DNA of 64,000 nt from Phaeosaccion multiseriatum (GCA_965112735.1 OZ218964.1:186001-250000), one strand, 5' to 3'; counted from the first letter of the stretch, positions 14,639-64,000 are shown. Made by a program: numbers and translations. Notes: generated by a model not told the origin, from the sequence alone.

Positions 14639-14711
<73 letters not shown>

Positions 14712-17700: not shown

Positions 17701-18565
17701 GAGCTGCCTGCGCCACAAGAAGAGGAGGAGGAAGGAGGCGGACGACGACGCGGAGGAGGAGGAGGAGGAGGAGGAGACGGAGGGGAGGGAATGGGAGCGG
17801 GTGGGCAACAGTGGGGAGGACAGCAGTGGGGACAGCAGCAGCGGCAGCAGCAGCACCTACAGCAGCAGCAGCAGCAGCAGCTACAGCGTGGGCAGCATGC
17901 GGGGACGTGGCAGCAGGCGTCATACGGGCTCGAACAGCAGCAGCAGGTCCTTGTGCATCAGCAGCGACAGCAGCACCAGCAGCAACACAGGGGGTACCCG
18001 CAGCAGGATTCTTTCTCGCCGCACGGCGGGCGCGGATTACCTGGGGCAGGGCTTGTGCCGGACTACCGCACAGCGCAAGGGCAGGGGCAGGGGCAGATCG
18101 GTCCACCACAGCAGTTCTACCAGCCGCAGCAGCAGCAGCAGCACCAGCAGCAGCAGCAGCAGCAGCACCAGCAGCAGCAGCAGGAGCAGCACCAGCAGCA
18201 GCAGCAGCAGCAGCACCAGCAGCGCTATCGAGAGGGGGACCCGCGTAGTGGGGCCCTCTCGCAGCTGGCGGGCCTGCTCGTGGAGGAAGACAGCAGGAGG
18301 GTGGTGCCTATGCCTGTCGGAAGTGGAGCAGTTGGTGCTTCGCAAGTGGAGCGGCTGGTGGCACAGCCCCAGCACTCGCACTACGCCGCACCGACCCACT
18401 CGAGGCCCTCGGAGGAAGATCAGCGGCGCCTGAGCGAAGCGAGGATGCATCAGGAGGAAGAGATTTTGAGGCGCCAGCGGTTCCAACGACAGCTGCAGAT
18501 TGAGGGGCAGCAACGCGAGCAACAAATGCGCCAACTCGCTATGCAACAGCAGTTGGCATTGCAAA

Positions 18566-18605
<40 letters not shown>

Positions 18606-21083: not shown

Positions 21084-24000
21084 ATGGCGGGAGGCAAGAG
21101 GAATAAGCGAAAGGCGAAGGGGGGAGGAGGAGGGGCGGGCCCTGGAGTAGGCGCAGCTAAGGCAGATAATCCTTTGGTAGCGGCGGCGGGAGCCGAAGGA
21201 AAGCAACGGCCCTCTACTCCTGACGCTGCTGCTGCTGTATCGGTTAGTGGCGACGACCTCGATGTCAGCATCACCCGGCCCTTTGTGAAGGACCTGATCC
21301 AATTAGATGTGTCTGCTGCGCATGAGCAGGCGCCTTCTGCTACGGTGTCGCCTCGTCCAGTGGGCCCAGAGGGCAAGAAGGAACAGCATCTGAAGGCCGA
21401 TGCTGCTATTGGAGTTCCACCGTCAACCCCTCCCGCTTTCTGTGAGGACCATGCCATTGAGGGGCAGGGCAGCGGGACCGGTACCGCCCCCGCTACTCCA
21501 GCAGCCACAGAAGCTCCGGCAGCCCCCACCGCAACGGAGCAAAACCCGAAAAAGAGCAAGAAAACGAAGAAGGAGTCCGCTGCAGCAGCCCTTGCCGCCG
21601 CCAAGGCCGCCTTAGAAGCTGCACTGAAAGAGGCGGAGGAGGCAGACGATGAAGATGAGGATGGGGAGGATGAGGAGGGCGAGGAAAAACACGAAGACCA
21701 ACAAGACAAGATCGGACACGTGGAGGTCGTGCTTAGGGGTGAGGAGGATACCATCAAGGAGGTGGTGGTGGACCCGGTTCAAGCGAAGATGGAGGAGGCG
21801 AGTGCATGGCAAAGGAGGGCGCAGGCATCGTCAAACTCACCACAAAGACCCAGTCGAAAGAGCCCCAAGCCAGAGCAGCCCAAGGAGGAGGAGGAGGAGG
21901 ATGAAGCGGCGTCCCCCGAAGAGGAGATGTCTCTTCTCGATGAAACCGCAGATAGAGTAGAGGAAACTCAGGAGGCCGTACCATTCACCACAACTGAAGG
22001 AGGCACGGACTCCATATCAAGCGGCAGGGCCCCGAGGGACCCCTCTCCAGACATGGTGACACCAGGCAACTGCCTAAGCTTGTCGGGGATGCGGGCGAGA
22101 GCAGCGGCCAAGAAGAAGGCAGCAGACGCCATCGCCGCCGCATCTCTCGCCGCCAAGCTCAAGTCTGATGGTGTGGGAAACCGAAAGGGTGCGCGCAAGG
22201 AAGAGGAGGAGGGGGTGCAGGGGCCATCAAGCAACAAGAGGAAGAAGGAGAAGCAGCAGCAGCCCAAGCTCAGCGCCAAGGAGGCCAAGGCCCTGGCCAT
22301 TGCTGACGCCAAGGCTCGCGCGGAGGCCAACTCCGTCCGTGACAAGGCCACCAAGGTGCGGAGAGGGAGGGCAATGCGCTACTTCAAAGACGCTGCTACT
22401 GCCTTGCTTTGGGGCGCCCGTCTTTAGTCTATTGTGCACCTCGTGGCTGTGTTACATTGTGGCCGTACCCTGGTCTGGAAGACTGGCCGGCTTGCCTCGA
22501 TCAACCCCTCTGCGTTCTTCTCATTGCGCATCGTCCGGCAGCTCGGCTCACTCCCTTCTCTGTGTGTATGTGCGTTTGTAACCATCTCTCCCCGTCATGC
22601 TGTAGGGCACCATCTGGGAGGAGGTCCTGTCAGGAAGTTTAAGTGGAGTGAAGCGAACCATCGAGGCGGGCACCAATCCAAACGAGGTACTAAAGAGAGC
22701 AAAGCCCCCTCCTGCGGCACTCGATCGGCCTGCACTCGATCGGCCTGCTCCCATCCCTTCCCTGTGCCCCCCTCCACATGATTAGTTCATTGATTTGCCC
22801 CTCCCCTCCTGCCTGTCTCTGCTGTACTATGCTCTGCTCTGCGAACTCTCTCACTTCCACAGACCGACGAGCAGGGGCGAACACCGCTGATGATTGCGTG
22901 TGCCCTGGGCTTTGAAAACATCGTCTCCCACCTCATCCGCCCCAACCTAACCCCCAGCGGCGGTGCGAGGCTCGAAGCTAAGGCCATCGAGGGCTGGACG
23001 CCCCTCATGGTGGCATGTGGAGGGGGGCATTTGAATGCCGTCAAGGACCTCATCCAGGCGGGGGCGGACGTGTCTGCGAGGGACTCCGAGTTTGGGTCCA
23101 CGCCGCTCATGTGGGCCTGTGGAGGGGGGCATGTGGAGGTCATCAAGGTGCGATTACGCTTTCCTTGATTGAGTTATTGGATGATTCGTTGATTGTTTGA
23201 TAGACAAAAGGCAAGTCCCCTGCGGATGTCCCACACCCCCAGAAGGAGCGAGGGCCAATCGACAGAAGTATGCAAGCCCCATCTGGCCTCCTGCTCGTCT
23301 CATGCTCTCCCTCCCTCCCCCCCTCCCTCCCTCCCTCCCTCCCTCCCTCCCTCCCTCCCTCCCTCCCTCCCTCCCTCCCTCCCTCCCTCCCTCCCTCCCT
23401 CCCTCCCTCCCTCCCTCCCTCCCTCCCTCCCTCCCTCCCTCCCTCCCTCCCTCCCTCCCTCCCTCCCTCCCTCCCTCCCTCCCTCCCTCCCTCCCTCCCT
23501 CCCTCCCTCCCTCCCTCCCTCCCTCCCTCCCTCCCTCCCTCCCCCTCCCTCCCTCCCTCCCTCCCTCCCTCCCTCCCTCCCTCCCTCCCTCCCTCCCTCC
23601 CTCCCTCCCTCCCTCCCTCCCTCCCTCCCTCCCTCCCTCCCTCCCTCCCTCCCTCCCTCCCTCCCTCCCTCCCTCCCTCCCTCCCTCCCTCCCTCCCTCC
23701 CTCCCTCCCTCCCTCCCTCCCTCCCTCCCTCCCTCCCTCCCTCCCCCTCCCTCCCTCCCTCCCTCCTCCCTCCCTCCCTCCCTCCCTCCCTCCCTCCCTC
23801 CCTCCCTCCCTCCCTCCCTCCCTCCCTCCCTCCCTCCCTCCCTCCCTCCCTCCCTCCCTCCCTCCCTCCCTCCCTCCCTCCCTCCCTCCCTCCCTCCCTC
23901 CCTCCCTCCCTCCCTCCCTCCCTCCCTCCCTCCCTCCCTCCCTCCCTCCCTCCCTCCCTCCCTCCCTCCCTCCCTCCCTCCCTCCCTCCCTCCCTCCCTC

Positions 24001-25676
24001 CCTCCCTCCCTCCCTCCCTCCCTCCCTCCCTCCCTCCCTCCCTCCCCCCAAAGTTCCTTGTACACGGGCCTTGCGCAGCCCCCGAGCACGTACTTGCCAA
24101 GAACGACGATTACTGGACGGCCCTCATGGTGTGCGCCGACGGCGGCTTCACCGAATGCTGCAAGCTCCTCGTCAAAGCAGGCGCCAGCTCCTGTGACTTT
24201 GGCGCAGACGGACAGACTGCGCTGGACCTTGCCGGCCGGGCTAACGAACATATCTGCGTCAGGTGAGGGAGTGAGGCTCTGGTGTGGGGGCGAGCCGTCC
24301 CAATCCTCACTCACACACGCAAATCAACACGGAGCTTTTGAGCACATTTGTTTGTATGTACACCCTCCCAATGCTTGTCCATGCTTGCCCATATGCTTGC
24401 CCATATGCTTGTCCATGCTTGCCCATATGCTTGTCCATGCTTGTCCTCCTTTCCCCAGGTACCTCGCTTCGCTCGCAGCACCGAGCTCAGCGGATTTCTG
24501 GGGGGCGGTGGAGGACGGAGATACCGAGCGAGTGCTCGAGTGGTTGGCCACTAACGGTCACTTGGTGCACGTGGTGAACGACGAAGGGCGGACGCCACTC
24601 TTGGTCACGTGCCTCGCAGGACATCTCGACCTTGCCAACTGCCTGCTGCAGGCAGGGGCCAAGGTGAGAGGGAGGACGAGGGAGGGCGAGCAGGAGGATG
24701 AGGATGAGGAGGATGAGGAGGAGGAGGGGGAGGATGAGGAGGAGGAGAAGGAGGATCGAAGAGGAGGATGGTGGGGAGGAGGAGGGGGAGAAGGCAACCC
24801 ACACACAACCCATCCGAACACGGACGTGCGATGAAGGTCCTCTGAGTCGCGCTGGGCTGGACCATGGAAGACCCCTGAAAGCTTGCTTCCCTTTCTGACC
24901 TCCCCCCCCCCCCCTTCGCATTCTCCGCCTCCTTCCTTTGGTCGATGCCCCTCCTCCTGTACCTTCTCAGGTGGACTTCCAGGACCCGTCGGGTACGTGC
25001 CCCATCGACGTAGCCGTGGTGCTGGGGCGGCTTGACTTGGTCAAGAGCTTGGTTCAGCAGGGGGGCGCGGACCTAGAAGTGGCCAATCAGAAGGGGTGGA
25101 CGCCACTTATGCAGGCAGTCATGACCAGCGATCTGGACATTATTCGGTGAGAAGGGGGAGGATTGAGTCCTCATACTTTCACTTGCTCATTCACTCTCTC
25201 TCTCACTCCCTCACTCACTCATTCACTCACTCACTCACTTACTCACTCACTCACTCACTTACTCACTCACTCACTCACTCACTCACTCACTCACTCAGTC
25301 AGTCAGTCAGAACCCTTTTGATTTGTTGAATTGATTGAGTTGGTCTCTCGATTTAATGATTGCTCCTCTTGGGGATAGGATAGTCCTGACTCTTATCCTC
25401 TCTTGGTCTTGCTTTGTCCGCTCCTTGCTCCTTGCTCTTCGCTCCTCGCGCCCGCGCCATCCTCCCCCGCGGGTACACAGCTTCTTGGTCGACTCGTGCG
25501 CCAGGGTCAACGCCAGCAACAGCGATGGCAGCACGGTACTGGACATTGCTGAGATGGCGGGGAAGAGCCACGTGGTGGAGTATCTGGAGACGAAGGGGGG
25601 CTTCAGTTCCATCGATGTCAGGAAGCAGATCTCGGCCGTGGAGGAGGGCAAGAGGGGCCTCTTTAAGTTGTGGTGA
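21084..25676 (+). CDS. Ankyrin-repeat protein with a long charged, disordered N-terminus
   Basis: Ankyrin consensus in successive exons: GRTPLMIACALG, GWTPLMVACGGGH, GSTPLMWACGGGH, WTALMVCADGG, GQTALDLA, GRTPLLVTCLAGH, GWTPLMQAV, GSTVLDIAEMAG. Confidence 0.85.
23307..24047. repeat. About 740-bp near-perfect (CCCT)n array in an ankyrin-gene intron
   Basis: Visible array with only a few phase slips. Confidence 0.95.
25189..25310. repeat. Intronic (CACT)n microsatellite
   Basis: Visible array. Confidence 0.9.
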
Positions 25677-28129: not shown

Positions 28130-46780
<18,651 letters not shown>

Positions 46781-47127: not shown

Positions 47128-48415
47128 TTATTTGTTAGTTACTTGTAAGTATCGTTGATGAAGGGCCTGCTGAGCTCTCATCATGGTCAAGACGAGAGTC
47201 GACCCGTTCCAGCTTGAGTTGCTGAGCCCGGCCTCTTGCGCATTCAGAATCTGTTGGAAGCACCTCTCAGCCAGCGGGCTCGGCATGTAGACTTCGTGTA
47301 GCGGCGGCACGTCGTCAACCAGAGGCCGCAGGAAGTAGCTCAACGCGGGAAGCAAATTCCTCGAGGCGAGAAAGTCTTCTGTAGAGAGGATTCGAGGCCG
47401 TGTGCCGCCGGCACTCTCGACTGCCAGTTGGAGCGTCTCTGGTGTAATGTTAAAGGCCTCACAGGCGGTGTTATACACCGCCGGTGCTGGTGGTGTATGA
47501 CTGCTGCGCCTACCAACTCCCGTACTTGCCACTCGCGGCTGTGCACTGAGCCGGACGATGACCTGCGACACCAAGTCAACCGGAGTGGCGTTCATAGCGT
47601 GCGCCACAACCTCCCCGTGCTTGCTTGCCTGCTCAATCATGGACGTGAACACGTCCCCGCGCGTGGGGGCAAATCCTGTGGAGGTGTGCCCTGCGACGAC
47701 TGGGACTCTGTAAACACTGACGTCCAGGCCCTCCTGCCCTGCCTGCGTGACGAGCTTCTCTGCTACCCACTTCAGGGTTTGGGGGAAACGAGACAAACAG
47801 CGAGAAGGTGTGAGCATAGCGTGATAAGAGGGTAGAGAGCAAGAGTAACGCAGCACTGTCCATGATCGTACCTTGCTTTGGTAGTACCCGAGCTGCTTGC
47901 CGAGCGTGCACCCCGAGGCAGGAGCTGCAGTCATGTCTCCCAAGGGCGCGTCGGCGGGTATCCTCCCGTCCTCGTTGGCCATGTCCGGAGTTAGAGCAGC
48001 TATTGTGGACACCATGTGCAGCGTCTTCAAAGATTTCGTAGCAGCGAAGCTGAGCACATGAAGAGTCCCCAGTACGTTCGGCGCGAACAGCTGCGCATAG
48101 CTCTTGGAGTAGCTGATGAGAGCGGCCGAGTGGTAAACGAGAGTCACTGTGCTGGCCAGGCGCTGATACACTTCTTTGGAAAGCCCGAGAGTCGGAGAAG
48201 TGATATTCCCCTTGTAGACCATCAGCCTCGCTCTTTCCGACTCGCGTAGAGTAAGCTTGGCTTCTTTCAAGCCGAACAGAGTGCGCTGCATGGCGTCCTT
48301 ATCATCCAAAGCGCGAACAATGCAGTGCACAGTCGACTGAGGGTGAGCATGCAGCAAGTCCACCAGCAGATACCGCCCTACGAATCCTGTCACGCCTGTG
48401 AGCAGGATGGACTCT
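47128..48415 (-). other. Terminal thioester reductase (R / extended SDR) domain
   Basis: ILLTGVTGFVG (Rossmann fold), VHCIVRA, LVYHSAA, NVLGT, MVSTIA, and GYYQSK|WVAEKL (YxxxK) once intron 47770-47871 is removed; VYRVP. Confidence 0.9.
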
Positions 48416-51400
48416 GCTACTGGTGTGCTCAACCTCACACCTCCTGCTGATGCCTGCCACGCCATTTCCCGTATCGTGGCGGCGATTTCGCTCGGCAGAT
48501 ACGCATCCGCCCACAGATCCGGAGCTTCTCGCTTACCCACAAGATCCGCCTCGAACTCTCCGTCAGCGCCGTTGCGACTGTGGGCTCTTCGCGACATACG
48601 CACCGCGGGCACCCCTTCGAGCAGCACATCGTCCGTCTGCTGCAGCCCGGGACCAATGAGAGTTCCCGGAGACACGCCGCAAGCACGGGGAAGAGACGCC
48701 GAGGCAGCAACAATGGATCCTGCCCCTACCGTCACCCTTCGGCCAACCTGAACCTTCTCAAATAGAACACAACAGGTGGTGCTTTCCTCGCTGTGAGCTG
48801 GAAGCGCCCTCCCTTCTTCCACGCTCCCAGTCACGCTGTAATCAAAGGGTAGAGACGCCGAGTCGCCTGCCCCCGCTGTCGCCCTTCGTCCAAGAAGGAC
48901 CTTCTCAAGCAGACTACAGCAATTGGTGCTTTCGTCACTGCGAGCTGGAAGCCCCCTCCCTCTTTCCACATGCACGACTCGTCGGGCATCGACCACGCAG
49001 TCCCTATCCACAACGCTTCCTGCCCCCAAGTGCACCAAATCGAAGCTGGACAGGCCATCCGTTGCAAGCACCACCGCATCTTTGCCCACTTCAGCTCCCA
49101 TGGCTCGTAACCACAAGGAGTGTGCTGCAGTGCCAGCGAGGCCGTTGACACCACTCTGTCTGGCTACCTGCGTGAACATAGTGCTGAACAAGTCTCTGTG
49201 GAACGTCACGCCCCCGACGGCCGCGTAGCAACCTGCGCGAGCTCGGCCAACGACGCCCCACTTCAGCACCACAGCCCACACAATCATAGCCATACTGAGT
49301 GACAAGAGAATCACAGGCGACATGACCAGAGCCAGCCACCTACCCACCGCAGTCACAAGCCACTGGGCCAACAGGGTGCTCGCGTACACACTGGTGAATT
49401 GAAACAGAAGAATGGCAACAGGAGCCACGATGGAGTACATCATGGTTCCCGCACCAGCCCACCACGCGAGTCCCCCACCCGCCCGAGGCTCCTGCTGCTG
49501 CTCATGCCGCTTGTGAAGCTTGACTCGTGTCACTAGGTCGCCACTGCGAAGAGTTCTCTCTCGCACCTTCGGATCGAAGGACGTCGATGAAGACGCACAC
49601 GTCAATGGACCGACCACAGAAGTATCGCAAAGCTCAGACCCCGGACACAGACAGGATCCTGCTGCTGTCACCGTGCAAGCTCCAAGCTTGACTGTCCCTG
49701 TATATCCTTGCGCCCGGGTGGCGAAGCTCCCCGACGCCACAGAGTGAGACCCCAGATCTAGCAAAGCAGGGTCCAGCACAGGGGAAGGAGCGCTCACTTT
49801 GGCAGTCCAGGCGACGCGAGCGCCCAGAGAACGAAGCCATATGACCATGCCAGGCCCTCCTGAGTGCAGAACCATGGACCGGGGGTACACCAGTCGCATC
49901 ATCACGTCGACAGCATGGACCTCTTGCCCCGTGACGCCGCGGCCACTGCTGCGGCTGCTGATGGCAGCAAGGGCTCCCAAGCATCGCCTCAGAGCGACAC
50001 TCATGGCGGTCATGCAGATGCCCGCAACTGAATAGGACAAGGCCAGAATCAGCATTGGCTTCGCCAGATACTGCTCCGTTGTCAGCTCCTTCAGCGGCGC
50101 GAGAGTGTCCACAAAACCAAGGGCGATGGGAAGCAGCGGCACCAGCGCCAGATCGAAGGTGGCGGCACATGCAGCCACGAGGTAGCCCACGTCGAGGGAG
50201 CGATAGTCCGGCACATAGCGTCCAAGCTGAGGCACGTACGTGAATAGGCCCCACGCTTTACTCATCTCCCCCCAGAAAAAGTACGCGGGTATACTCGCGG
50301 CCGCCATGCAAACTGCGGCCAGCGCGAAGCCAACCACAGTTCTCATGACGTCTTTCACGAGTGTAGCTGCAGGGTCATTCACACTGGGCAGCAGGGAGCT
50401 GCTCCCCATCCTATCAGCATTGTCGTCGCACTGCTTGGCCGGAGAGCCCCCCCACTCTGTGCAAGGGGCAAGGGGCCCACACCGCCCGCTGACCACCGTG
50501 GACGGTCGCAAGCGTACCATTTCGCCCATGGTTGTGCCTCCAAACACCTGAGACGATGCCCCCAACACGCAATCTGCGCCAACGGTGATTTGTCGGAGAA
50601 GGAGATGGTGGTCCTCTATCACCGCAGGCCGAACCCGACAAAACTCCTCCACAGTGGACTGCCGCCCCAAGTGCACCAAGTCGAACTCCGATACCGACAC
50701 CGAATGCAGGCGACACCCATGCCCAATCTTCGCTCCGAGTGCGCGAAGCCACCATGTCCACACCACACTCCCATGCAGCGGCAGCCGCTGCAACGCAAAG
50801 TCCGTCACGCGATCCACAAAGAGCCAGCGGAAGTAGTACCCGCTATTGATGGGATAAGACCCCGCCCGGTACCTGCCAATGACCACCCACTTGGTCAGCG
50901 TCACCACCGCCATGAGCAGAAGAGCCCACGAGAGGAAAGCGAGAGGTACACAGGCCAGCGCGGTCCACCTGCCCCACTTGTCTAGCACAATCGAGTCAAG
51001 GGCGATGACAGCGGGCAGCGCAGACGCGGCGACCAGCAGCGAGCTGTAAACCATCGCCACGATGCCCATGCAGAAGCTGACAATGTCGGAGGAGGACGAG
51101 CCAACGTAGTCAGCATCCCTGCCGTCCAGAGCACGGTCACCATCTTCTCTCTCGTCAGCATCACTGGCGTCCAGAGCACTGTAGCCTTCTCTCCTCTCGT
51201 CCTCCCGCACAGCAGCGGCGTCGCTGGAGTCTGCTTTGATCACCACGCCCACACCTCTATTGTCTTCTAAAGGAAATAAAAGCCCCAGTATATGCCGCGC
51301 GATATCTGCCGGTGTCGGGTGTTCGATCGAAATCGAAGGCGGTAGACTAAAGCCGACCCACGCGGAGAGTCGGTTGACAATCTCCACCGAAGCCAACGAG

Positions 51401-54400
51401 TCCACACCGGCCTCCATGAGGAGGGTGGAATCATGAATCAGACCACCTTCGTCTCCAATGCAGTGCTCCACAACCTGCTTCACCTTGTTCACGACCATCG
51501 CCTGGCGCGCCACCGGTGGCAGGTCCAACAACTCCTCATGTAGCTCCGAAGTTCCTTCTCCTGCTTCCAGATCCCCCTTTACATCGCCCAAAAGCCCTTC
51601 GAGCATGTGAACACGCCCACCTCTCGTGGCCTTCCCATACATGGCCCAGTCCATCCCAGGCAGGATGGACACATCACCCAAAGACGCTGAAGACGCTGAC
51701 GACATCACAGCGGCATCTAAGGCAGCCATGCCCAGCTCAGCTGACACCGTGCCCACACCCGCAAGCTCCAACTGCTTTTGAACGATATCGAGCTGGGCGG
51801 CCATACCAACGTCAGCCCACGGTCCCCACTGCAATGACATCCCTGCGAGGCCGAGGTGTCGCCTGTGCCGCATCAAACCGTCCACAGCCGCGTTCGCCGC
51901 AGCGTAGTTGGCCTGTCCAGCGTTGCCCAGTACTCCAGCCATGGATGTGAAGCACACAAAGAAATCCAGGCTTGAGGCGTGATCCTCCTCCCTCGACCAA
52001 CTCAAAGAAAGCTCGTGCAAGTTGACCGCTCCCTGCACCTTCGGTCGGAAGACGTTCGTCACGCTCTCCGCCGTCTGCTCTCCCATCAGCTTATCATCCA
52101 ACACCCCGGCAGCATGCACCACGCCGCGCACAGGGGGCAGCAGAGGCAGCACGCCCCCCAGGCAAGTCCGAAGTGCCTCAGCATCAGCAACATCACACGT
52201 AGGAGTATGGATCAGCTCCACCTTGTTCTGAAGCTGCTGCCATTGTTCTGTCATGCTCTCGGCGACCTTCCCACTCCTCGACAGCAGCACAAGGTGACGA
52301 GCGCCCCTCGACGCGAGGTGCTGAGCAGTCACGAGGCCGAGAGCCCCCAGACCGCCGCTGATGACGTACGTGCCATCGGACACGACTGGTACACCATACA
52401 AGGGGTTGGTCAGCACCACCTTGCCGATGTGCTTCGCTTGGCTCATGAGTACCATGGCCTTCTGAGTATCCTCCCTCATGTCAAAGGGTATGGTTGGTAA
52501 GGGCTTCACATTGCCAGACATGCAGTCCTCAGCCAGATGCTGCAGCTCGTCGCTTATCCAGCCCGGCTCACCCGCCGAAAAGTCGACATCGATAATGGCG
52601 CCCACAGCGACGAGGTTGTACCTCACATCGGGCCGGGCGGTGCGCATCTGGTCGTGATTCCACACGCCTCGCTTGCCAATCTCGACGAATGTACCACCCT
52701 CGCTTAGCATGGCCAGCGAGAAGGGAATGAAGTCGTCGCTCAGAGAGTTGAGCACCACATCGACCTTCACCTCCCCCATGGACAGCTTGAACGCCTCTGC
52801 GTCTCGCGATGACGCAATGTGCTCCACTCCCAAGCTCCGGAGGAAGTCATGCTTCACAGCAGCACCAGCAGTGGCGTACACCTCTGCGCCGACCCGCTGA
52901 GCATACTGCACGGCAGCAAGGCCCACACCGCCCGATGCAGCGTGAATCAGCACCTTCTCTCCAGCCTTGAGGTCGTGGAAGGCCTTCACCACCGTCAAGC
53001 ACACGGTGGGAAGTGCAGCGGCCTGCTCGAAGCTCAGCACGGCCGGCATCACAGCCAGGCACGCATCACTCGTCGTCATATGACTGCGCAAACATCCTCC
53101 GTCCGCAAAGCCAAACACTGCGTCGCCGACACGGAAGCGCGAGCTTCCTCCGACTCTGATCACCTCCCCGGCGAACTCGGAGCAAGGATCCCCAGGATCG
53201 CCAGGGTACATGCCAAGCACATTAAGCACGTCCCGGAAGTTCAGGCCAACAGCCCTGACTGCCACCTCTACGATGCTGCCAGCTGGGTCAAGGAGCTCAT
53301 GTTTGCCCACATCAACATCATCGCGAAGGAGAAAGGCATTGGCTATACTACCTCTTGCCCTAAGCTCCAGGGAAAACGGAAGATTCAAAGCTGGGCGTGC
53401 AAGCCGAGGCATCCAGCACTGACCATCGCGTACCCACACATCTTCTGTGGTGCCAGGGAAGGCCAAGCCTAAGGCAACCTCGCTGTCTGAGGCCTCCTTG
53501 TCGCTCAGGTCCACCACGCGAATCTGCATGTAAGGGTGCTCCATCCTTGCAGTCCGCACCAAACCTGCCACCCAGCTGTGACGCCAGTCCTCGCCGCTGT
53601 CGACGCCTCTCGTCAAAACCGTCAGGGGCATATTCGACGTAGTCGACAGGCTCCTGAGTAGAGCCATCAGGGCGTAAGCCGCTCGTGCTTGCTGGCCCCC
53701 TTCTGCGTCTTCTTCGCCAGCTCCGGGTATCAGCACGTACAAGACGCGAGCCCACTCATCCTCTCCAAGAAGAAGAGCATCATCATCCCCGGAGACGTCT
53801 ACCCCCCCATATCGAGTGTGGACGTGCACGTTCTGCGGAACGCAGCGCCGCACTACAGCCATAATTGCAGTCTCTCCCTCCCTCTCGTCCTGTGGAATAA
53901 CCACCAGCCACTTCTGTGGCGGCGCCGCCTCAGCAGGGTCAGTATCACTACCAGGGGCCTCCTCCTGTGTAGACGGTTCAGCAGCCTGCCACTCCAATGC
54001 GTACATTGCACGACGAACGGGGCTGGCACGCACAAAGCCCCTCGCCCGCTGCACACGGAAGCCCCGCATCTCCACGAGCACCTCTTTGCAGTCGAAGTCT
54101 GCAATGCGGATGTCAACCTTGACGCTGCCCGCCACTGACTGGACCTCAGTCAGCTTCGTGTGCACCCACACGTTCTTTCCCGTCATGGAGGCGGACACGA
54201 TCACCTCGTCAAAGCCAGCAGGTAGGAATGGAGAGCTCCCCCCCTCCTTGAGCAGCTTCCTTGGCAGCGCTTGCATGATGGCATGGGTAGCATTGTCCAG
54301 CACCGCGGGGTGCAGAGCAAAGCCCTTCATCTCCCACGGCTCGCACAGCTCCTCATCCATGGCACACACGGCCGACAGAACCTCTCCGTCCCCTCCGTAC

Positions 54401-57400
54401 ATGTGGCGGGTCCGCTGAAAGCGGGGGCCGTACTGGAAGCCGGCGTCTGCGAAAGACTTGTAGAGCTCACTCGATACGTCCTGCTCGCCAACTCTAGCTC
54501 GAATGGATTCCACGTGCAGCGAAGCACGCGCCGTGCTTCGCTCCAAGACAGACACGTGCTTCATTCTCGCCGTGGTGCCCTTGTCGCCCGTGGCACCTCC
54601 GAAGAACTGCATGCTTGCATCTGCCGTGTGAAGGGCACTCATCCCGGCACAGACCATTGGATGGCGGCTTTGCGCATGGTCCGTGCCGGCCTGTTGGAAA
54701 CCCTCAATCTCCAGTGGAACCACAAAGCTGGCTCCTCGCAGGACTACCTCCTGCTCCACCCCGAGCTGTCTTCCTCCTAGAGCAACGACGACGCCCACTT
54801 CAATGTACGTCACCCCCGGAATGATCACCACATTGTTGACGGCATGGTCCTTGAGAAGGTCCTTGAGGTGAGGGGAGAAGGGGCTGGCGAGCCGCATTCC
54901 GTCCCCCTCTTGGACCACCTCGCCACTGGGCATAAACGCCAGCGGAGGCCTGAACCAGCGGAACGCTTGGCGTGTGGGGTACAGATCGCCACGCTCACAC
55001 TCGTCGTCCTTCGGAAGAGCGTCGATGAGGCTAACACCCTCTCCGTCGGCATGCGTGGCCGTACTCCCAGCTCTGGGACCGGATAGCACGGCGTGAGCAT
55101 TGGTTCCGCCGGCACCGAAAGAGCTCACGGCAGCAACGAGCGGTCCTGTCCACCCGCCTCGACCCACTGGCTCCATGGTCACAGGCAACGTGACAGGGAC
55201 GCCGGCGAGCTCCAGCTCGGGATTGATGTTCTTCAAATGCAGGTTCGGAGGCGCGGCGCGGTGCTGCAGCACCAGTACGGTCTTGATGAGGCCTGCAATA
55301 CCTGCGGCACCCTCCAGATGGCCGATGTTGGCCTTCAGCGCACCTACCACCAAGGCATTTCCCTCGCTGCGGTCCGGGCCACAGTACACCGCCTTGAGGG
55401 CGCTTATCTCGATGGGGTCACCCAGCGCCGTTCCCGTGCCGTGCGCCTCCACGAAGCTAACATCTGCGGGGTCTCTTTCCGCTTCTGCCAGCGCGGCAGA
55501 CAGGAGCTGCTGCTGAGCAAGAGGACTGGGTGCCGTCAGACGAGCGCTGGCCCCATTGTGGTTGACCGCACAGCCCTCGATCACCGCTAGCACAGTGTTC
55601 CCGCTGGCCACAGCATCATCCAGGTGCTTCAGCACAATGGCACCACATCCTTCGCCTCTGACATACCCATTTGCCGATGCGTCAAACGTCTTGCAGCGCC
55701 TGTCGTAAGGCAGAGAAAGGTAAGTGAGGTGTGAGTGGGGTGTCACGGAAGGTCTGGTTTAACTGTAGAGAAGACGCCCAAGAATGAGCTGCATGAGCAG
55801 TAATAGGATAAATGAATCAGAGCACACACACCGGAGCGGCCGGTGCAACTTACCAGTCGGGGGAGAGGAAGGTTCCCGCAATCAAGGACTGAAAGGTGCT
55901 CTTCCCGAGCAGCAGGTTCACGCCACCGACCACCGCCGAGTCGCACTTGCCCAGGCGGAGGTTGCTGCAAGCAGCGTCCAGAGCCACCAGAGACGACGAG
56001 CATGCTGTCTGCAGCAACGTGCTGGGGCCACAGAGACCCAGAGTGTAGGATACGCGATTCGCAATGTTCGAAGCCGTCATGCCCATTCCGCCGTAGGCGC
56101 TCTGGGCGGTATCTCCTGCCACGAAGCCCCAGTCCGTGTCCGACAAGCCCACAAACACGCCGGTGTTGCTGCCCCGCAGGCTGCTCTTGCTGTGGCCCGC
56201 GCGATGGAGGGCCTCGAAGGCCACCTCCAGCATGAGGCGCTGATTGGGGTCCATTGCCTGTGCCTCGGCAGCACTGATGCCAAAGAAGGCATTGTCGAAC
56301 ATCTCAACGCCCTCGATGAACCCTCCCTGTAGCTGCACCTCGCCCTTCTTACTCTCCCACCTGTCGTGTGGCGCTGCCGTAATGCAGTCTCTGCCCTCGC
56401 ACATCAGTGACCAGAACTGCTCCGGGCTGTTGGCTCCACCGGGGAGGCGACACGCCATACTCACGACAGCGATGGGGGCTCGAGAGTCCGAGGAAAAGTG
56501 CTGTCTTATCAGCACCTCTTCACGCTCTGTATCACGCGGCATCTCAAGAATCTGGGCCTCGAGCCACGCGGCCATTGCAGACACCGATGGATACGAGAAG
56601 AAGGCGCCATTCGACACGGGGACACCACACCAGGCCTCAATTCGACTGCGAAACTCCACAGACGCCATCGAATCGAGTCCGGCTTCCATCAAGGGCATCG
56701 TTGCTGCCAAGGTGAAGTCCTCGCCAACGCACTGGACTGCTGTGTCCGTCAGGACCTGTTCGATCCTCTCCCGCCGTGCTGACTCCGGCAAGTGCAGGAG
56801 CTCCTCCCGTACCTCGGCATTGACGCTGTAGCCCTTTGACGCATCACCACTTCCTCTGCGGTCCGTCAATTGCCCGAGGAAATCGCTGTGCACAGGGTCC
56901 AAGCTCGCTCGAAATTTGCCCCACCTCATGGCCGGCATGATGGCCACCTCCTGCACGTTGGCTTGCACGTGACTTGCAAGGATGGCACCCAGTGCCTTCA
57001 TACCCAGCGCCGATGAGATCAGGCCCACTCCAGCCATCTCCGCAGCTTTGGACACCATTTCAAGCCGCACCGCCGTGCCTACGTCGCCCCATGGGCCCCA
57101 GTGAACGTTGGAAGCAGGAAGGCCAAGCTGGTGTCGGCGGTACCGCATCAGCCCATCCAAAGCAGCGTTGGCCCCGGCATTGGCGCTCTGATTGGACAAG
57201 CCGAGCAAAGCGGACGTCGACGAATACGAGGCGAAGAAGTCGACCTCCTCCCTGCCGCTCGCCGCCCACTCAAGGCACAGCGCGTGGAGATTCCAACCTC
57301 CCTGGATCTTGGCGGCAAAGACATTTCGCACGTTCTCTTCCGTCTCGACCGACAACATCCCCCTTGCGCCAATTACCCCCGCTGCGTGAATCACACCCCG

Positions 57401-60400
57401 AACATGAGGCAGCCCCACCAAGGCCGTTGCTACAGCATCTCGAAGCTGGCTCATGTTGGAAACATCGCAGGCCACGGCCACAGCGGTGACATTCTCCATG
57501 CTCTGCAGGGCCTGCCACAGCTCTGAAACTTCCTCCGCCGCCCGGCCGCTTCGAGATAGGAGGAGCAGGTGTCTAGCGCCTTGGGACACCAAGTGATTCG
57601 CCGTCACCAGACCCAGCCCCCCCAGACCACCGCTGATCAGGTAGGTCCCATCCTCCCTGCACGCGAAACGATCGACTCCTGCCGATGTCAGATGGAGTGT
57701 GCTGGGCACCAGCCTCGGAGCGAGGATCTCACACCCTCGAACCAGCAGGTCCACGCCTCGTCCTCCGTCCTGAGCTTCTGCAGCCAGCGTCACAGCCTGG
57801 GAGACAGTTTGGTCTTCCCTCTCCTCTACTCCGGGTTGAGCATCCTCAGACTGTGGAGACATGGCACACTCAAGGTCCACGTGGTTCACGGCGAGGTCGC
57901 CCCGCTCCAGGCGTATGCTTCGCACCAGCCCAGCTGCCCAGCTGTCCTGCCAACTAGCACCGCTGTAGACACCCGTTGTCACCACGGTGATCGGCATCAC
58001 TGCCTCGTCCCCGTCTAAACTCTGTACTGTTTGCACAAAGTGGATTGCCCCATCGGTAGCAGAGCACGTCCCTGACGCCAAGTAGAAGAGATGGGCCCCA
58101 TGTGGCTGCGCGTCCGAGCCGACCGCCTCCACCATGTGCACCTCTACACCACTTGCTGTCGCCGCGCTTCGGATACCTTCCAAGGCTCTATGGTTGCTCG
58201 ATGCGTGGTGGCCTTCGGCTGCCTTGGGAATCACGACGAGCCACGGAAGGCTGCTGGTCAGCGAAGCCCGCTGCGAAGCCGTGGGCACCTCCACCGTCTC
58301 CCACTCAACAACATATAGTGGGCCCTGCTCCGCTTCACTCCGCGTCTGAGGCGCTGCTGTGGCTCGCGCTGTGTACCAAGGAAAGGCTTTGCGCGTTGGG
58401 AACAGGATGTGCTCCTTGCCCTTACTCTTTTGCTGCTGCACTGTGCACAGAGCCGCTCCAAACGAATCCTCAGAGCTCTTCTCGCGCGTGACAGAAGATA
58501 CCCACACCAGCCCCTCGCGACGCTCGCACTTGGCTCCCATATTGCTCAGCACAAGGTTGGGGCCCACCTCAATGATGCTCAGGTCAGCCCCCCTCCCGTC
58601 TCCCATCCAGTGCTCCACCAGCGTGTGGATGCCTTCTGCGAACAGCACTGGCGACAGCATGTGTTGCACCCAATACGTCGCCTGCGTCACCTCCTCCTCT
58701 CTCGCCACCTCACCCGTCACGTTGGACACCAACGGGATGCGTGGGGCGTTGAATGACACCTGCCTCAGAACCTCCTCCAGAGTACGCACAGCGGGCTCCA
58801 TCAGAGGAGAGTGGAAAGCGTGCGACACCTCCAGAGCCTTACAGCCCACCCCATCTGCCGCGAGCTTCTCCACCACCTTGTCCACAGCGCTGCGAGCTCC
58901 AGACATCACGCTCGCCCTCGGTCCATTCGACGACGCCAGCACCACCTCCCCTGCCCCCCCCGCAGCGTCGATGCTTGCCAAAGTCGCCTCCTTGCCTGCC
59001 CTCACTGCGAACATCACCCCCTCCCCCTCGGGGCAGGCCTGCATGGCGGCTCCTCTCTTGGCGGACAGCATCAGCCCATCCTCCAGCGACATGACGCCGG
59101 CCACGCACGCCGCCACTACCTCGCCCAGGCTGTGGCCCATCACCATGGACGGCTCCACGCCCTCCGACTTCCACAGCTCGCACAGGGCGTACTCCAGCAC
59201 AAATAGGCACGGCTGGCAGTAGCGTGTCTCCTTCAGCAGCGCTGCTTGTGCAGTCTTCTCCTCCTCCTCCTCCCCGTCCTCAGCGGCGGTTGGGTACATG
59301 AGCTCCACCACAGACTTGTCTAGCCAGGCCCGCTCCATGAGCAGCCTGCTGCACCGCCGCACGCACTCGCGGAACACGCCCTCCTTCTCGTACAGCTCCC
59401 TGCCCATGCCCACATACTGCGAACCCTGCCCTGTGAACAAGAACGCCACTGGCGTTTGGGCTTGATAAACATGAACAGCTGGTGCCAAATCGCCCCGCTT
59501 CTCCCCATAGCTCCTCAGCAGCACGTGTGCGTTTGCTCCTCCCGCCCCGAACGAGCTCACCCCCACCAACACGTCTCCCTCGTCCTCCAGCTGCACCATC
59601 GCTGAGGGGAGCTGCACGGGGAAGCCGTCCATGTCCAGCTCTGGGTTGATGCTCTCGAGGTGGAGGTTGGCGGGCACAGCGCGGTGCTGCAGCATCAAGA
59701 CGGCCTTGATGATACCGGCAATACCCGCCGCACCCTCCAGATGGCCAATGTTGGTCTTGACCGCACCTACTACGAGCGGGAAAGAATCTTCACGGTTCTT
59801 TCCATACGTGGCCCTGAGAGCGCTCATCTCAATGGGGTCGCCGAGCGAGGTTCCCGTGCCGTGCGACTCCACGATGCGTACCTCGGAGCCCTCTCGACCG
59901 GCCTCACGCAGCGTCGTCTCGATGAGTCTCTGCTGGGCGGCGGGGCTCGGGGCAGTGAGGCGGGCACTGGCTCCGTTGTGGTTCACGGCACAGCCCTCAA
60001 TCACAGCGAGGACCGTGTCTCCGACAGCGAGGGCGCCATCTAGACGTTTCAGCACAACGGCACCGAATCCTTCACCACGCACGTATCCGTTTGCCGACGC
60101 GTCGAACGTCTTGCAGCGCCTGAGAAGGGCATGGGAATTGTGGGATGGGGTGAGGTAAGTTGACTTGGTAAGGCACTCAAGTCGTTCTCACTGTGCGATT
60201 TGCCAGAGAGGCGATGGCCAAAGGGAGAAGAGGGGTGAACACAAACAGGAATGGAAGCACTCCACACATAAGCGCACGTACCAGTCGGGCGATAAGAAAC
60301 CACTTCCCTTCAGCCTTTCGAAGCTCTGCGTGCCCAGCAACAGATTCACTCCGCCCACCACGGCTGCGTCGCACTTGCCCATGCGTAAGCTGCTGCAAGC

Positions 60401-63400
60401 GCTGTCCAGGGCCACCAGAGAGGACGAGCACGCCGTGTCAGTGGTCATGGACGGGCCCTGCAGTCCGAGCGTGTACGACAGACGATTGGACACGCTTGCC
60501 CCGGCTGCGCCCATGGTGCTATACGCGCCTGTCGAGGATGACCCTTCCCCGAGTGCTCCCCAGTCACTGCCGCTCATGCCCACGAACACTCCGGTCTGAC
60601 TGCCTCTCAGGCTTTGCTTGGTACAGCCCGCAGTCACAAGCGCATCCAGTCCCACCTCCAGCATCACCCGTTGGTGTGGGTCCATTGCAGAAGCCTCAGC
60701 ACTGGATATGCCGAACACAGATGTATCGAACATTTCCACGCCGTCGATGAAGCTTCCTTGCCACTGCTGCTCATCCTCCTCCTTGCTCGCCCAGCGGTCG
60801 AGCGGAGCTGGCTGGACACAGTCCTTGCCATTGCTAAGCATGGCCCAAAACTCCTCTGGGCTGTTCGAACCACCTGGCAAGCGGCACGCCATGCCCACAA
60901 TAGCCAGGGGGGCAGTCATGCTACCTCCAGCCGGTTCAGCATTCCTGTCCTCATCTTCACCCTCCTCAGCCCCCAAGACCAAGCCCTCGAGCCACTCTGT
61001 CAGCGCTGCCACTGAGGGGTAACTGAAGAGCACGTCGTTGGGGACCGGCACGCCGAAACGAGCTTGAAGTCGACTCCGAAGCTCCACCGTAGACATGGAG
61101 TCCAGCCCAGCCTCCATCAAAGGCCTCAAAGCGTCGAGCTCGATGCCTGCTTCCCCAATGCATGCTTTTGCCATCTCCATGATTAAAGCCTGCAGCATGG
61201 GCTTTCGCTCACCCTCCGACAGCTCCAGTAGGTCGCGCTTAACCTCGGTAGTCACACTGTTGCTAGCCTTGTTCTGCGGTCCCACCATCGAAGCCTCTCT
61301 AACGAGAGCATCGAGCATCCCCGGGTTGCTAGCCGTCTCAGAGAAGGCGGGCCAGTCCATGCCAGGCAGAACCAAGAGCTCGCGTGATGCCGCAGATGGG
61401 GCTGACACGCCGGCATCAAGCGCCGCCATACCCAATGCCTTACTGATGAGCCCAACGCCGGCCATCTCCAGACTGGCCATGGCAGCTTCGGACCGAGCGG
61501 CCATGCCAGCTTCGGCCCACGGCCCCCACTGGAGGGCCACAGAGCTGGAGTAACCGAGGCGTCGACGATGCTGCATCAACCCGTCCACAGCAGCGTTGGC
61601 TGCAGCATAGTTGGCCTGGCCTGCATTGCCTAACACACCTGCCATGGATGTGTAGGACACAAAGAAGTCCAAGGGCCAGGCCAGCTGCAGCGACAGCTCG
61701 TGCAGATTCCAAGCGCCCTCCACCTTCGGCTTGAAGACCTCTTCGATACTCTCGGGCGTCTGGTCCACCAGCAAGCGATCGTCGAGCACGCCGGCAGCAT
61801 GGATGACACCTCGCACGGGCGGCATGCTGCTGAGCGCCGTGCCTAGGGCCTTCCCAAGCGACTGTGCGCTAGACACGTCGCACGATACAGCCCTGGTGCT
61901 CACCCCGCCGGGCACGTTGAGAAGCTCCTCCCACAGCGCCTGGGAGTCCGCCTTGACCTTTCCCCTCGCGAGAGCAGTACAAGATGACGAGCTCCTTTAT
62001 CAGCCAAATGCTTCGCAGTCGCCAGCCCAAGCGCCCCCAGCCCACCGCTGATAACGTAAGTCCCGTCTCGCACGACGGGAATGCCACACTCAGGGCTACT
62101 GAGCACAACCTTCCCAATGTGCTTCGCAGTTCTGAGGAAGTTCATTGTCTCCGCAAGCTCATCCCTTAAGTCGAATGTCTTCACTGGTAGCGCCTCGGCC
62201 CTGCCCGCCTCACTGTCCGCTGTCAGCTGCTCCAGCCCAGCGAACGCCCAGCCCTGCTTCTTGGCCTTGAAGTCGTCTGCTATCATGGAGTCCAGCGCAA
62301 TCCGGTCGTACAGCACGTCGGGCCTGGCAGCCTTCATCGCCTCCCTGGTCCACACGCCTCGCTTGCCGATCTCCATGAAGCGCCCATTCTTCGTCAGCAG
62401 CTCCAGAGAGTAAGGGATGAAGTTGTCCGACAGGCAGTTCAGCACCACATCCACCTTCGCAGCTCCCATGGAAGCCTTGAAGGCCTCCGCATCTCGCGAC
62501 GACGCAATGTGCTTCACGCCCAGACCTCGCAAGTAGGCGTGCTTCTCCTCGGATCCAGCAGTGGCGTAGATCTCCGCTCCGATGCGCTGAGCAATCTGCA
62601 CAGCCACCAGACCCACTCCACCTGACGCGGCATGGATGAGCACCTTCTCACCACGCTTCAAGCCAGCGAGTTGCTCAAAGGCGTGCACCACTGTGAGCCA
62701 CGCGATAGGCAGCGCTGCCATGTCATCGAAGGTCCTGTTCGAAGGCATGTTGGCCAGGCACACGTCACTTGTCGTTACGTGGGAGCGGAAGCAGCCCTTG
62801 TCCGGAAACCCGTAGACCTTGTCTCCCACTTGAAAGCGCGACTTTCGCGATGCTCGAGTGACCACTCCCGATAGCTCGATGCCAGGCAGTCCAGGGTCGC
62901 CAGGGTACAGGTCGAGCACATTCAGCACGTCTCTGAAGTTGAGCCCCACCGCCTTGACACAAATTTCAATCTCCCTGTCCTGCAAGGCAGTGTCTCTCTC
63001 GGAAGGGAGTACGTCCCTGCGCTTCAAGCCTCCCTCGATGCTTCCCCTCGCTATGAGATCGAAGGAGAAGGGAAGGCGGACTACCGAGGAGCGAGTCAGC
63101 TGAGGCGTCTCGCACTCTCCTCCTTGCACACGCACGTCCTGATTCTGGAGGGGAAGACACAGCACCAAGCTCATGTCCTCCACATCCGCTTCCACGACCA
63201 TGATCTGCATCTGTGGCCGCTCGATACGAACGGAGCGAATTATGCCAAAGACCAGCATGTGTGCCCACCCCTCGCCCCCCCCGCTCAGCGTGTCGTGTAG
63301 TAGCACCATCAAGGGGACTGGTCTCTTGGCCAGCTGCTGCGTTACCGTCAGCAGCTTCTGTGCTTCCTGCTGAGCGGCGCTGGCTGATGACCTTGCCGTC

Positions 63401-64000
63401 TGTCCCTCCTCTCTTTCACCGCCGAGCACGTATAGCACTCGCGACCACTCGCCCCTCTCCAATGCCCTCACCACATCCTGGTCATAGACAGACTCCTGCA
63501 CACGCAGCGTCACGTGCTCGGGCATGGACTGCTCAATCCGCTTCACCAACGCTGCAGCTGCACTTACTCTATCTACCAAAGCCAGCCACGTCTCCTTCTC
63601 CACACCATTCTTCCCCGTGGTGGTTGCCAGAGCCAGCGCCTCGTCTGGCTGCCACTCCAGATAGTATAAGGCTCGACGAAGAGGGTTCAGGTGCGTGAAG
63701 CCCTTGGCCCTCTGCAGCTTGACGCCCTTCATGGTCACGAGCACGTACTGGCTGTCAAAGTCGGCAATGACAATGTCAAAGTTGACGCTGTCGCGCTTGT
63801 CGCTGATCTCGGTGAGCACGGTATGCACCCACACCTTGTTCCCTCTGATGGCGCCCTTCGCAACCACGTCATTGCATCCAGCTGGCAAGAATGTACCACC
63901 CTTGGTCAGCTCAGAAGGCAGAAGCGCAAGCATGGTGTGTGCGGCACTGTCCAGCACGGCGGGGTGGAGGTAGAATCCACGCACCTCCCACTCAGAGCAC
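47128..64000 (-). CDS. Giant modular type I polyketide synthase, 5' partial; exons 64000-60282 (apparent 1-nt frameshift at ~61962-61965), 60119-55854, 55699-47872, 47769-47128
   Basis: ORFs 61900-63984, 60188-61915, 55850-60082 and 47128-55746 link through one frameshift and two phase-2 GT-AG introns (SPD-TG|G-RCKTFDASANG). Canonical KS, AT, DH, ER, KR, ACP and terminal reductase motifs are present. Confidence 0.95.
47770..47871 (-). other. In-frame, stop-free intron (102 nt) in the reductase domain
   Basis: AAG|GTACGA...pyrimidine tract...TGAAG|TGG. Removing it restores the conserved YxQSKWVAE. Confidence 0.75.
48600..51090 (-). other. Pls/NRPS-terminal-like membrane domain: three repeats of [transmembrane hairpin + hexapeptide left-handed beta-helix]
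   Basis: Hydrophobic helix pairs followed by KWVVIGRYRAGSYP..YFRW and KWGVVGRARAGCY. Three copies of WLR(A/S)(L/M)GA(K/R/E)(I/V). Hexapeptide repeats ITVGADCVLGASSQV, VKLGACTVTAAGS and VQVGRRVTVGAGSIV. Terminal WGGSPA and LEGVPA. Confidence 0.75.
51280..56480 (-). other. PKS module n: KS, DH, pseudo-KR, ER, KR (B-type), ACP; no AT
   Basis: QTACSSS, AHGTGT and NIGHLE (KS); LKDHAVNNVVIIPG and HPAVLDNATH (DH); VRAVGLNFRDVL and LIHAASGGVG (ER); HAAGVLDD and GQANYAAAN (KR); AGVDSL (ACP). No GQGxQ or GHSxG motif between KS and DH. Confidence 0.9.
55700..55853 (-). other. Phase-2 intron (154 nt) in the KS of module n
   Basis: GAC TG|GTAAGT...GACAG|G CGC TGC AAG restores SPDWRCKTFDA. Confidence 0.9.
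56550..60915 (-). other. PKS module n-1: KS, AT (malonyl-type), pseudo-KR, KR lacking the catalytic Tyr, ACP; no DH or ER
   Basis: DTACSSS, SHGTGT and NIGHLE (KS triad); FTGQGSQ, GHSLG and HAFH (AT); SGGLGGLG but NQSANAGAN (KR); AGLDSM (ACP). Boundaries approximate. Confidence 0.9.
60120..60281 (-). other. Phase-2 intron (162 nt) in the KS of module n-1
   Basis: GAC TG|GTACGT...TTCTCAG|G CGC TGC AAG restores SPDWRCKTFDA. Confidence 0.9.
60960..64000 (-). other. PKS module n-2 (partial): DH (C-terminal half), pseudo-KR, ER, KR (B-type), ACP
   Basis: HPAVLDSAAH (DH Asp); VKAVGLNFRDVL and LIHAASGGVG (ER); SGGLGALG, HAAGVLDD and GQANYAAAN (KR); AGLDSM (ACP Ser). Boundaries approximate. Confidence 0.9.

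Follow-up and report, generated by a model that had tools for sequence, protein, structure and literature searches.

Assembly lines of the polyketide synthase (PKS) and nonribosomal peptide synthetase (NRPS) types are considered to terminate in a soluble release domain (TE, R or terminal C), and we know of no studied counterpart of a membrane-embedded domain, of the type found in epsilon-poly-L-lysine synthetase (Pls), standing between the last carrier domain and a reductase. Such an arrangement is encoded on the minus strand of a 64,000-nucleotide stretch of DNA from Phaeosaccion multiseriatum (GCA_965112735.1 OZ218964.1:186001-250000; hereafter the window, from the first letter of which all positions are counted), at the end of a modular type I PKS gene. 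It raises the question of how this synthase releases its product and of what the membrane domain contributes. We tentatively propose, as a reading that falls a little short of an even chance, that release is reductive and occurs at the membrane, the Pls-like part operating as a non-canonical hand-off or acceptor site and not as an iterative condenser. This proposal is supported by a single frame running from the ketosynthase (KS) to the reductase (R), the homology of the membrane domain to Pls and to delta-poly-L-ornithine synthetase (PosA), an intact R domain, and the joint inheritance of the Pls-like and R domains.

The last block of the synthase gene

A frame of 2872 codons (47128-55746, minus strand), i.e. 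8.6 kb devoid of stop codon and frameshift, encodes in this order KS-DH-ER-KR-ACP, a three-unit Pls-like region and a thioester reductase, as judged from the Pfam and NCBIfam profiles (DH, dehydratase; ER, enoylreductase; KR, ketoreductase; ACP, acyl carrier protein). The Pfam domains are the C-terminal part of a KS, a DH, an ER, a KR, a PP-binding domain (amino acids 1425-1486) and NAD_binding_4 (amino acids 2449-2730). The rest of the last PKS module (51475..55746, minus strand) comprises the KS C-terminal part, DH, ER and KR, and has no acyltransferase (AT). It is followed by the last ACP (51289..51474, minus strand; PP-binding E value 1.9e-8), whose phosphopantetheine serine lies in GVDSL (amino acids 1447-1451, about nucleotide 51400), and by a linker to the first membrane helix (51100..51288, minus strand), the translation of which is acidic, of low complexity and flexible. 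In this linker, Tandem Repeats Finder identified a 45-nt tandem repeat of 2.1 copies (51109-51201, minus strand; EGYSALDASDADERE / DGDRALDGRDADYVG). An earlier note made from the sequence of the window had claimed that the same frame runs on from the last ACP through the three-unit region to the reductase; this was confirmed, with no stop codon on the way, and all the motifs that it quoted were located in the translation where it had placed them. The stop codon (47128..47130, minus strand) is followed by non-coding sequence rich in (GT)n/(CA)n, and no continuation of the gene was found past 47128, the downstream DNA being only microsatellite-rich, low-complexity sequence.

Three further minus-strand open reading frames (ORFs) lie upstream (55853-63984) and correspond, according to Pfam, to ...DH-ER-KR, KR-ACP-KS and KS-AT-KR-ACP-KS. 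As in other modular type I PKSs, the modules KS/(AT)/DH/ER/KR/ACP are repeated in one direction over the four consecutive minus-strand ORFs (47131-63984). The gaps between the ORFs are about 100 nt long with GT...AG ends, and two of them (55747-55849 and 60083-60187, minus strand) each split a KS near position 222 of the 252 positions of the Pfam profile, as expected if modules were duplicated with the intron included. From these GT...AG gaps of about 100 nt, at least two of which occur at the same point inside the KS, it follows that 47128-55746 constitutes the final exon-like block of a multimodular type I PKS from a eukaryote with short introns.

The R domain (47131..48408, minus strand) matches PF07993 (NAD_binding_4; E value 7e-47, 160 bits versus a cut-off of 20.1) and, in two stretches of the unspliced frame, TIGR01746 (E value 4.5e-53, 180.8 bits versus a cut-off of 213). 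It possesses the TGxTGFxG Rossmann motif (TGVTGFVG, amino acid 2450) and, after the removal of an intron, the catalytic YxxxK (Y2621 and K2625 in GYYQSK/WVAEK). This in-frame, 102-nt GT-AG intron (GTACGA...CTGAAG; 47770..47871, minus strand) was recognized from the DNA and from the alignment with seven homologous R domains. Reading through it adds 34 spurious codons that split the Tyr/Lys motif GYYQSK (amino acid 2620) in the genomic frame; the 34 amino acids are absent from all seven homologues, and their excision restores GYYQSKWVAEK. This NAD(P)H-type reductase, which had been described as complete, is therefore intact with its motifs present once the intron is removed, whereas its YxxxK is interrupted in the genomic frame by 47770-47871. 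Further in-frame introns could be hidden likewise elsewhere in the PKS gene.

The Pls-like region and its reductase-linked relatives

The region located between the ACP and R (amino acids 1551-2384, about 834 residues) consists of three units, each comprising a hydrophobic helix pair, a WLRxxGAxxG motif and hexapeptide-type repeats, which bears out the earlier description of some 830 residues in three units. The motifs are WLRALGAKIG (amino acid 1666), WLRSLGARV (1970) and WLRAMGAEVG (2212), together with KWVVIGR (1619), KWGVVGR (2162), GSPA (1767) and GVPA (2378), while hydropathy places the helix pairs at amino acids 1555-1615, 1803-1917 and 2097-2156. Units 1 and 3 share 38% identity over 130 amino acids (BLASTP E value 8e-19), far beyond chance; unit 2 is much more diverged, with a weak internal-repeat match (E value 0.027).

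The three-unit region matches TIGR02353 (NRPS_term_dom) in two stretches with an E value of 7.7e-50 and 169.9 bits, not reaching the curated NCBIfam cut-off of 423.1 bits; as judged from its sequence, it is a clear Pls/PosA homologue, although its score is nowhere near the equivalog level. When 1.84 billion representative proteins were searched exhaustively, 1537 relatives were obtained, mostly Pls/PosA-type NRPSs of 1300-1350 amino acids with the A-T-terminal domain organization, none of them exceeding about 33% identity, and a word-indexed homologue search in the band of 1580-5026 amino acids gave just five distant matches. An AlphaFold2 model built on an alignment of 146 Pls-like regions (mean pLDDT 80.5, pTM 0.84) is made up of three repeats, each with two long helices and a beta-helix. 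When this model was compared by Foldseek with the Swiss-Prot AlphaFold models, a prediction thus being set against a prediction (AFDB model), the best match by far was PosA residues 613-1332 (875 columns, E value 4.4e-35, TM score 0.70 by query). The next matches were soluble hexapeptide acetyltransferases superposing on unit 1 (TM score by hit 0.5-0.7, E value about 1e-4). Searching the PDB by sequence and by fold retrieved no Pls/PosA terminal domain, only soluble beta-helix acetyltransferases.

Like the members of the Pls/PosA family, the region has six membrane helices in three pairs, each pair preceding a soluble unit of about 180 amino acids in a three-fold repeat, and in the predicted structures the three left-handed beta-helices form a pseudo-trimer on the helical bundle. 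It departs from the family in not being the final domain of a single-module A-T NRPS-like protein, since a PKS module precedes it and a reductase follows it. The Pls-like homology and the pseudo-trimer of in-chain beta-helices on six membrane helices, both put forward in the earlier note, are thus recovered by the TIGR02353 and Foldseek matches and by the AlphaFold2 model, respectively; a pseudo-trimer had already been predicted for PosA (Patel et al. 2023, PMC10522769). As the helices are paired, the ACP, the three beta-helices and the reductase all lie on one side of the membrane, in agreement with the even helix count previously advanced.

The association of a Pls-like region with a reductase is not restricted to Phaeosaccion. 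Using Pfam and cluster look-ups of the longer matches, we found the order C-A-T-Pls-like-R in Prorocentrum cordatum (CAK0807952.1), Symbiodinium pilosum (CAE7780214.1) and one transcriptome ORF, as well as a fragment of this kind in Cladocopium goreaui (CAL1133602.1); A-..-Pls-like-R in the chytrid Cladochytrium tenue (KAJ1556441.1), with a partial orthologue in Dinochytrium; Pls-like-R in metagenomic proteins; and ACP-KS-AT-FMO-DH-ACP-Pls-like-R in one uninterrupted 10.8-kb ORF of a 416-kb ENA contig. On this ENA contig (L001), the PKS-Pls-like-R protein is encoded by a single intron-free ORF (3001-13791) preceded by a separate small AMP-binding fragment (1841-2455), so an exon for an N-terminal fatty-acyl-AMP ligase may be missing from the gene model. 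Other PKSs end in a Pls-like region without R, namely those of Stygiella incarcerata and of a JGI metagenome protein (A-ACP-KS-AT-KR-...-Pls-like). The presence of the carrier-Pls-like-R order in other protists, once behind a PKS, does away with the uniqueness that had been considered for this architecture; the accompanying statement that no characterised PKS has this terminus holds as far as the literature was searched. That search retrieved no paper joining Pls-type domains with algal or protist PKSs and none on TIGR02353 by name; a preprint on Cladocopium single-nucleotide polymorphisms gives an NRPS_term_dom gene as a terminal domain of unknown function, the survey of algal PKSs by Shelest 2015 makes no mention of a membrane or reductase end, and Vieler 2012 records only a type I FAS-like gene. 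The carrier-Pls-like-R proteins have no characterised member.

In a tree of the 146 Pls-like regions (FastTree only, with the columns of the histidine motif described below left out, and with long branches), the Phaeosaccion region belongs to a clade of eight rows (support 99), all of which are followed by a reductase, and this clade is nested in a mostly eukaryotic set of 19 rows. The gene is a member of this eukaryotic reductase-linked clade by its tree position, by the loss of the motif and by an insert between TM3 and TM4 (the third and fourth membrane helices). As a new finding, the compared sequences indicate that reductase-linked Pls-like domains are one well-supported clade, all members of which lack the conserved histidine motif.

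This motif, QTHLFEDRVMK, which we defined from the alignment and which is not a published one, contains in unit 3 the sole histidine of the family conserved at more than 90% (92% of the 146 aligned members). At this position the Phaeosaccion protein has R2256 in the MAFFT alignment, and the region fails to align to a hidden Markov model (HMM) built from canonical members only. By these two approaches (MAFFT and alignment to the canonical-only HMM), every member of the reductase-linked clade was found to be devoid of QTHLFEDRVMK. The chytrid proteins also lack the unit-3 histidine, whereas the reductase-less Stygiella PKS-Pls protein keeps it. In units 2 and 3 of the Phaeosaccion protein, other residues stand in for most of the polar ones that canonical members conserve. 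Clade-wide conservation is concentrated in unit 1, which keeps the family-invariant K1619, R1640, D1689 and E1711 and has in addition S1635, D1645, E1687 and SGR1753-1755, which only the reductase-linked members conserve.

Unit 1 (50422..51096, minus strand) comprises TM1, TM2, the juxtamembrane motif KWVVIGR, WLRALGAKIG, a left-handed beta-helix and GSPA. It holds the best stretch of the TIGR02353 match, it is modelled with pLDDT 90-98, and it is the most canonical of the three, all three units of the bacterial Pls-type hits aligning best to it. Unit 2 (49507..50373, minus strand), delimited from the helices of the model (residues 253-292 and 352-395), the alignments and hydropathy, comprises TM3, a hydrophobic insert, TM4, WLRSLGARV and a degenerate beta-helix with the canonical polar residues replaced; its pLDDT is low at model residues 325-346. 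The insert of about 60 amino acids between TM3 and TM4 (amino acids ~1834-1890; positions 50047-50259 of the window, minus strand, amino acids ~1830-1900) is a common feature of the reductase-linked clade that bacterial Pls/PosA lack. The model is of low confidence over this stretch, which could form a re-entrant loop or add a further helical hairpin. The TM3-TM4 linker is where Pls mutations shorten the polymer (Hamano 2014, as related in PMC8506220).

Unit 3 (48595..49476, minus strand), recognized from its motifs, the model, the alignments and its BLASTP match to unit 1, comprises TM5, TM6, KWGVVGR, WLRAMGAEVG, a beta-helix and GVPA, without QTHLFEDRVMK. As seen in the alignment and in the DNA, its beta-helix contains two diverged tandem copies (48754..48969, minus strand) of a segment of about 49 amino acids (LPA[R/H]S[D/E]EST.CC..[L/F]EKV..GRR), which appear as insertions specific to this protein (amino acids 2260-2280 and 2284-2326) with pLDDT below 50 at model residues 725-777. 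The segment is an insertion relative to the whole family; among the homologues compared, the duplication is specific to this gene, and it is placed exactly where canonical Pls/PosA proteins carry the histidine motif. We considered that the insert might be an intron, a 147-nt GT...AG span (48754-48900) being able to excise one copy in frame, and rejected it in view of its poor 5' site (GTCCTT). Of the 18 codons that differ between the two copies in the DNA, 7 have synonymous changes only; we treat the duplication as presumably coding. A linker with short helices and low pLDDT (model residues 855-875) then connects the Pls-like domain to the reductase (48409..48594, minus strand).

Proposed release of the product at the membrane

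From the above data we propose the following sequence of events. The finished chain is held as a thioester on the last ACP which, being tethered by the acidic linker of about 65 amino acids, could reach the beta-helix face as well as the reductase. The actual release would be performed by the reductase, to yield a long-chain aldehyde or alcohol. The Pls-like part would no longer carry out Pls-type iterative amide condensation, as we infer from the loss of the unit-3 histidine motif and the retention of the acidic/arginine site of unit 1. It would anchor the megasynthase to the membrane, and it may either accept the hydrophobic product or direct it into the bilayer or through it, or else couple it once to an acceptor at the unit-1 site.

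Four points weigh against this proposal. First, we found no experiment (in the literature) or solved structure (in the PDB) that pinpoints the catalytic residues of the Pls/PosA terminal domain, so that the missing histidine is suggestive, and not decisive, of a lost condensation. Second, the conserved residues of unit 1 could support a real acyl transfer. Third, the four sequencing runs used (as Logan contigs) behave as DNA, with an even depth over intergenic and coding sequence and no splice joints. Fourth, the variants in these DNA runs are about half synonymous here (19 of the 38 affected codons), most of the non-synonymous ones falling in unit 2, so that the constraint on unit 2 may be weak; the proportion itself fits a coding sequence under moderate constraint.

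The second of these points leads to the alternative that survives best, although we regard it as rather unlikely. The Pls-like domain would be an active membrane acyltransferase that transfers the chain from the ACP a single time to an acceptor with a hydroxyl or amine group (e.g. a lipid head group, wall component or polyamine), without the canonical histidine, R acting on some chains or on another intermediate. Its fold is that of left-handed beta-helix acyltransferases, unit 1 keeps the invariant K1619, R1640, D1689 and E1711 along with the clade-specific E1687 and SGR1753-1755, and those relatives that possess neither R nor TE (the Stygiella PKS-Pls protein and P0131) must release their product via the Pls-like domain. 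Furthermore, the donor that Pls ligates to a free acceptor is likewise carrier-bound (PMC9205021). Yet the histidine motif is missing in all the reductase-linked members sampled (the eight-row clade and the chytrid NPS4) and kept in most others, units 2 and 3 have other residues in place of the conserved polar ones, and two release catalysts acting on one carrier would be redundant.

The same losses bear on the ligase or polymerase function inferred in the earlier note, according to which R makes an alcohol onto which the beta-helix trimer repeatedly esterifies ACP-bound chains, generating a wax-ester, polyester or algaenan-like polymer at the membrane. The absence of the histidine motif from this protein and all its reductase-linked relatives, together with the disappearance of most polar residues of units 2 and 3, implies that Pls-type condensation cannot be assumed, and the upstream modules make a polyketide and not a diamino acid, unlike the isopeptide-polymerising Pls and PosA. 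This polymer model can draw on the Pls/PosA relatives being iterative polymerases that hold the free growing chain (PMC10522769, PMC9205021), on the ACP, the beta-helices and R sharing one side of the membrane, and on the building of eustigmatophyte algaenan from long-chain diols, the reducing enzymes of which are unknown (PMC6872974, PMC11211512). There is, however, no direct evidence for it, the motif most conserved among known polymerases is absent, Pls-like-R also occurs behind NRPS C-A-T domains in dinoflagellates and chytrids, where no polyketide-alcohol polyester is expected, and the links reported in algaenan are ethers, not esters. We therefore consider this model as possible, unsupported and somewhat weakened, and on the whole improbable. 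It is equally hard to credit that the Pls-like region takes no part in chemistry or transport, being a mere membrane anchor or a relic in decay, or that this gene copy is a pseudogene: the canonical residues lost from units 2 and 3, the duplicated, poorly modelled insert of unit 3 and the many non-synonymous variants of unit 2 would fit such a decay, but the 8.6 kb contain no stop or frameshift, all three units have a confidently predicted fold, and the domain has been kept with R, and with clade-specific conserved residues, across very distant eukaryotes.

Returning to reductive release at the membrane, it may be extended into a broader hypothesis, which we offer as a speculation with a minor share of the probability: the histidine-less Pls-like domain and the reductase would make up a new release module of assembly lines, which couples reductive off-loading to membrane delivery or ligation, occurs in both PKSs and NRPSs across several protist lineages, and would serve here in the production of long-chain aldehyde, alcohol or diol precursors of surface lipids or of a resistant wall polymer. 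A Pls-like terminus would place a megadalton synthase at the membrane, and the recurrence of the Pls-like-R unit in dinoflagellates, chytrids and uncultured eukaryotes points to a common, though unstudied, solution. The unit could offer a way into the question of how very hydrophobic polyketide lipids, for instance long-chain diols, alkenols, wall polymers and possibly precursors of toxins, are exported or deposited by protists. Finally, the absence of the histidine from reductase-linked members and its conservation in most reductase-less ones bear on the catalytic mechanism of Pls and PosA themselves.

Surroundings of the gene and comparison with known systems

In the DNA runs, the summed contig depth over the KR region (51526-52700) exceeds that over the Pls-like and reductase parts about 10-fold, which suggests a low copy number for the terminus and many genomic copies of the KR-module sequence. 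The interval 47128-52700 displays dense single-base variants (about one per 50-100 nt), and the runs assemble there into short contigs only; such dense variants are compatible with mixed strains or with a pair of diverged haplotypes. The interval 42000-44700, which lies downstream of the PKS gene, consists of long (GT)n/(CA)n microsatellites and low-complexity pseudo-ORFs rich in Gly/Glu/Arg, for which no protein family match is expected. Elsewhere in the window, a row of plus-strand ORFs (11128-19344) with a DDT domain (11128-12891) and a partial PWWP domain (15136-16812) is probably one intron-containing gene for a chromatin protein. The base composition of the interval 22001-24000 stands out (GC 0.65, GC skew -0.40), and many ORFs overlap there on the two strands (23143-24834); it is probably a block of repeats or of low complexity.

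The systems closest to the Phaeosaccion terminus are the other eukaryotic carrier-Pls-like-R proteins, i.e. CAK0807952.1, CAE7780214.1, CAL1133602.1, the ENA metagenome PKS (P0156/P0082) and P0025/P0157, the chytrid KAJ1556441.1 being more distant. They have the same domain order, are collinear with it over the three units, and share with it the loss of the histidine motif, the TM3-TM4 insert and a single clade of the tree. They differ from it by their low identity (23-29%), by having mostly NRPS C-A-T domains upstream and not a multimodular PKS, and by lacking the duplicated insert of unit 3. Among algal PKSs, the PKS-Clade II of Nannochloropsis (Balzano et al. 2019, PMC6872974) is drawn with transmembrane helices and the organization AMP-PPT-KAS-AT-KAR, like P0131, which ends in a Pls-like region. 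As the membrane region is not named Pls-like in PMC6872974 and the comparison is one of drawn architectures, we take this similarity as a lead only.

Concerning the individual domains, the R domain resembles the R/TR domains of PKSs, NRPSs and carboxylic acid reductases in its TGxTGFxG and GYxxSKWxAE motifs, its C-terminal subdomain and its position at the end of the assembly line; whereas those are joined to the carrier by a short linker, here a membrane domain of about 830 amino acids stands in between. The left-handed beta-helix O/N-acetyltransferases (maltose and galactoside O-acetyltransferases, serine acetyltransferase) superpose on unit 1 and are trimeric, like the arrangement of the three units. 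They are, however, soluble homotrimers that use acyl-CoA, while the Phaeosaccion protein has three non-identical copies in one membrane-anchored chain and would use a carrier-bound donor.

The most informative comparison is that with PosA of Acinetobacter baumannii and Pls of Streptomyces albulus, the terminal domains of which likewise span about 700-830 amino acids in three tandem units, each with a helix pair and a left-handed beta-helix, pack as a pseudo-trimer and directly follow a carrier domain. In PosA and Pls an A-T didomain stands upstream and the Pls-type domain is the last one, whereas here it follows the ACP of a PKS and precedes a reductase. Unlike PosA and Pls, the Phaeosaccion protein has neither the unit-3 QTHLFEDRVMK motif nor most of the conserved polar residues of units 2 and 3, and it has acquired in addition the hydrophobic TM3-TM4 insert and the duplicated insert of unit 3.

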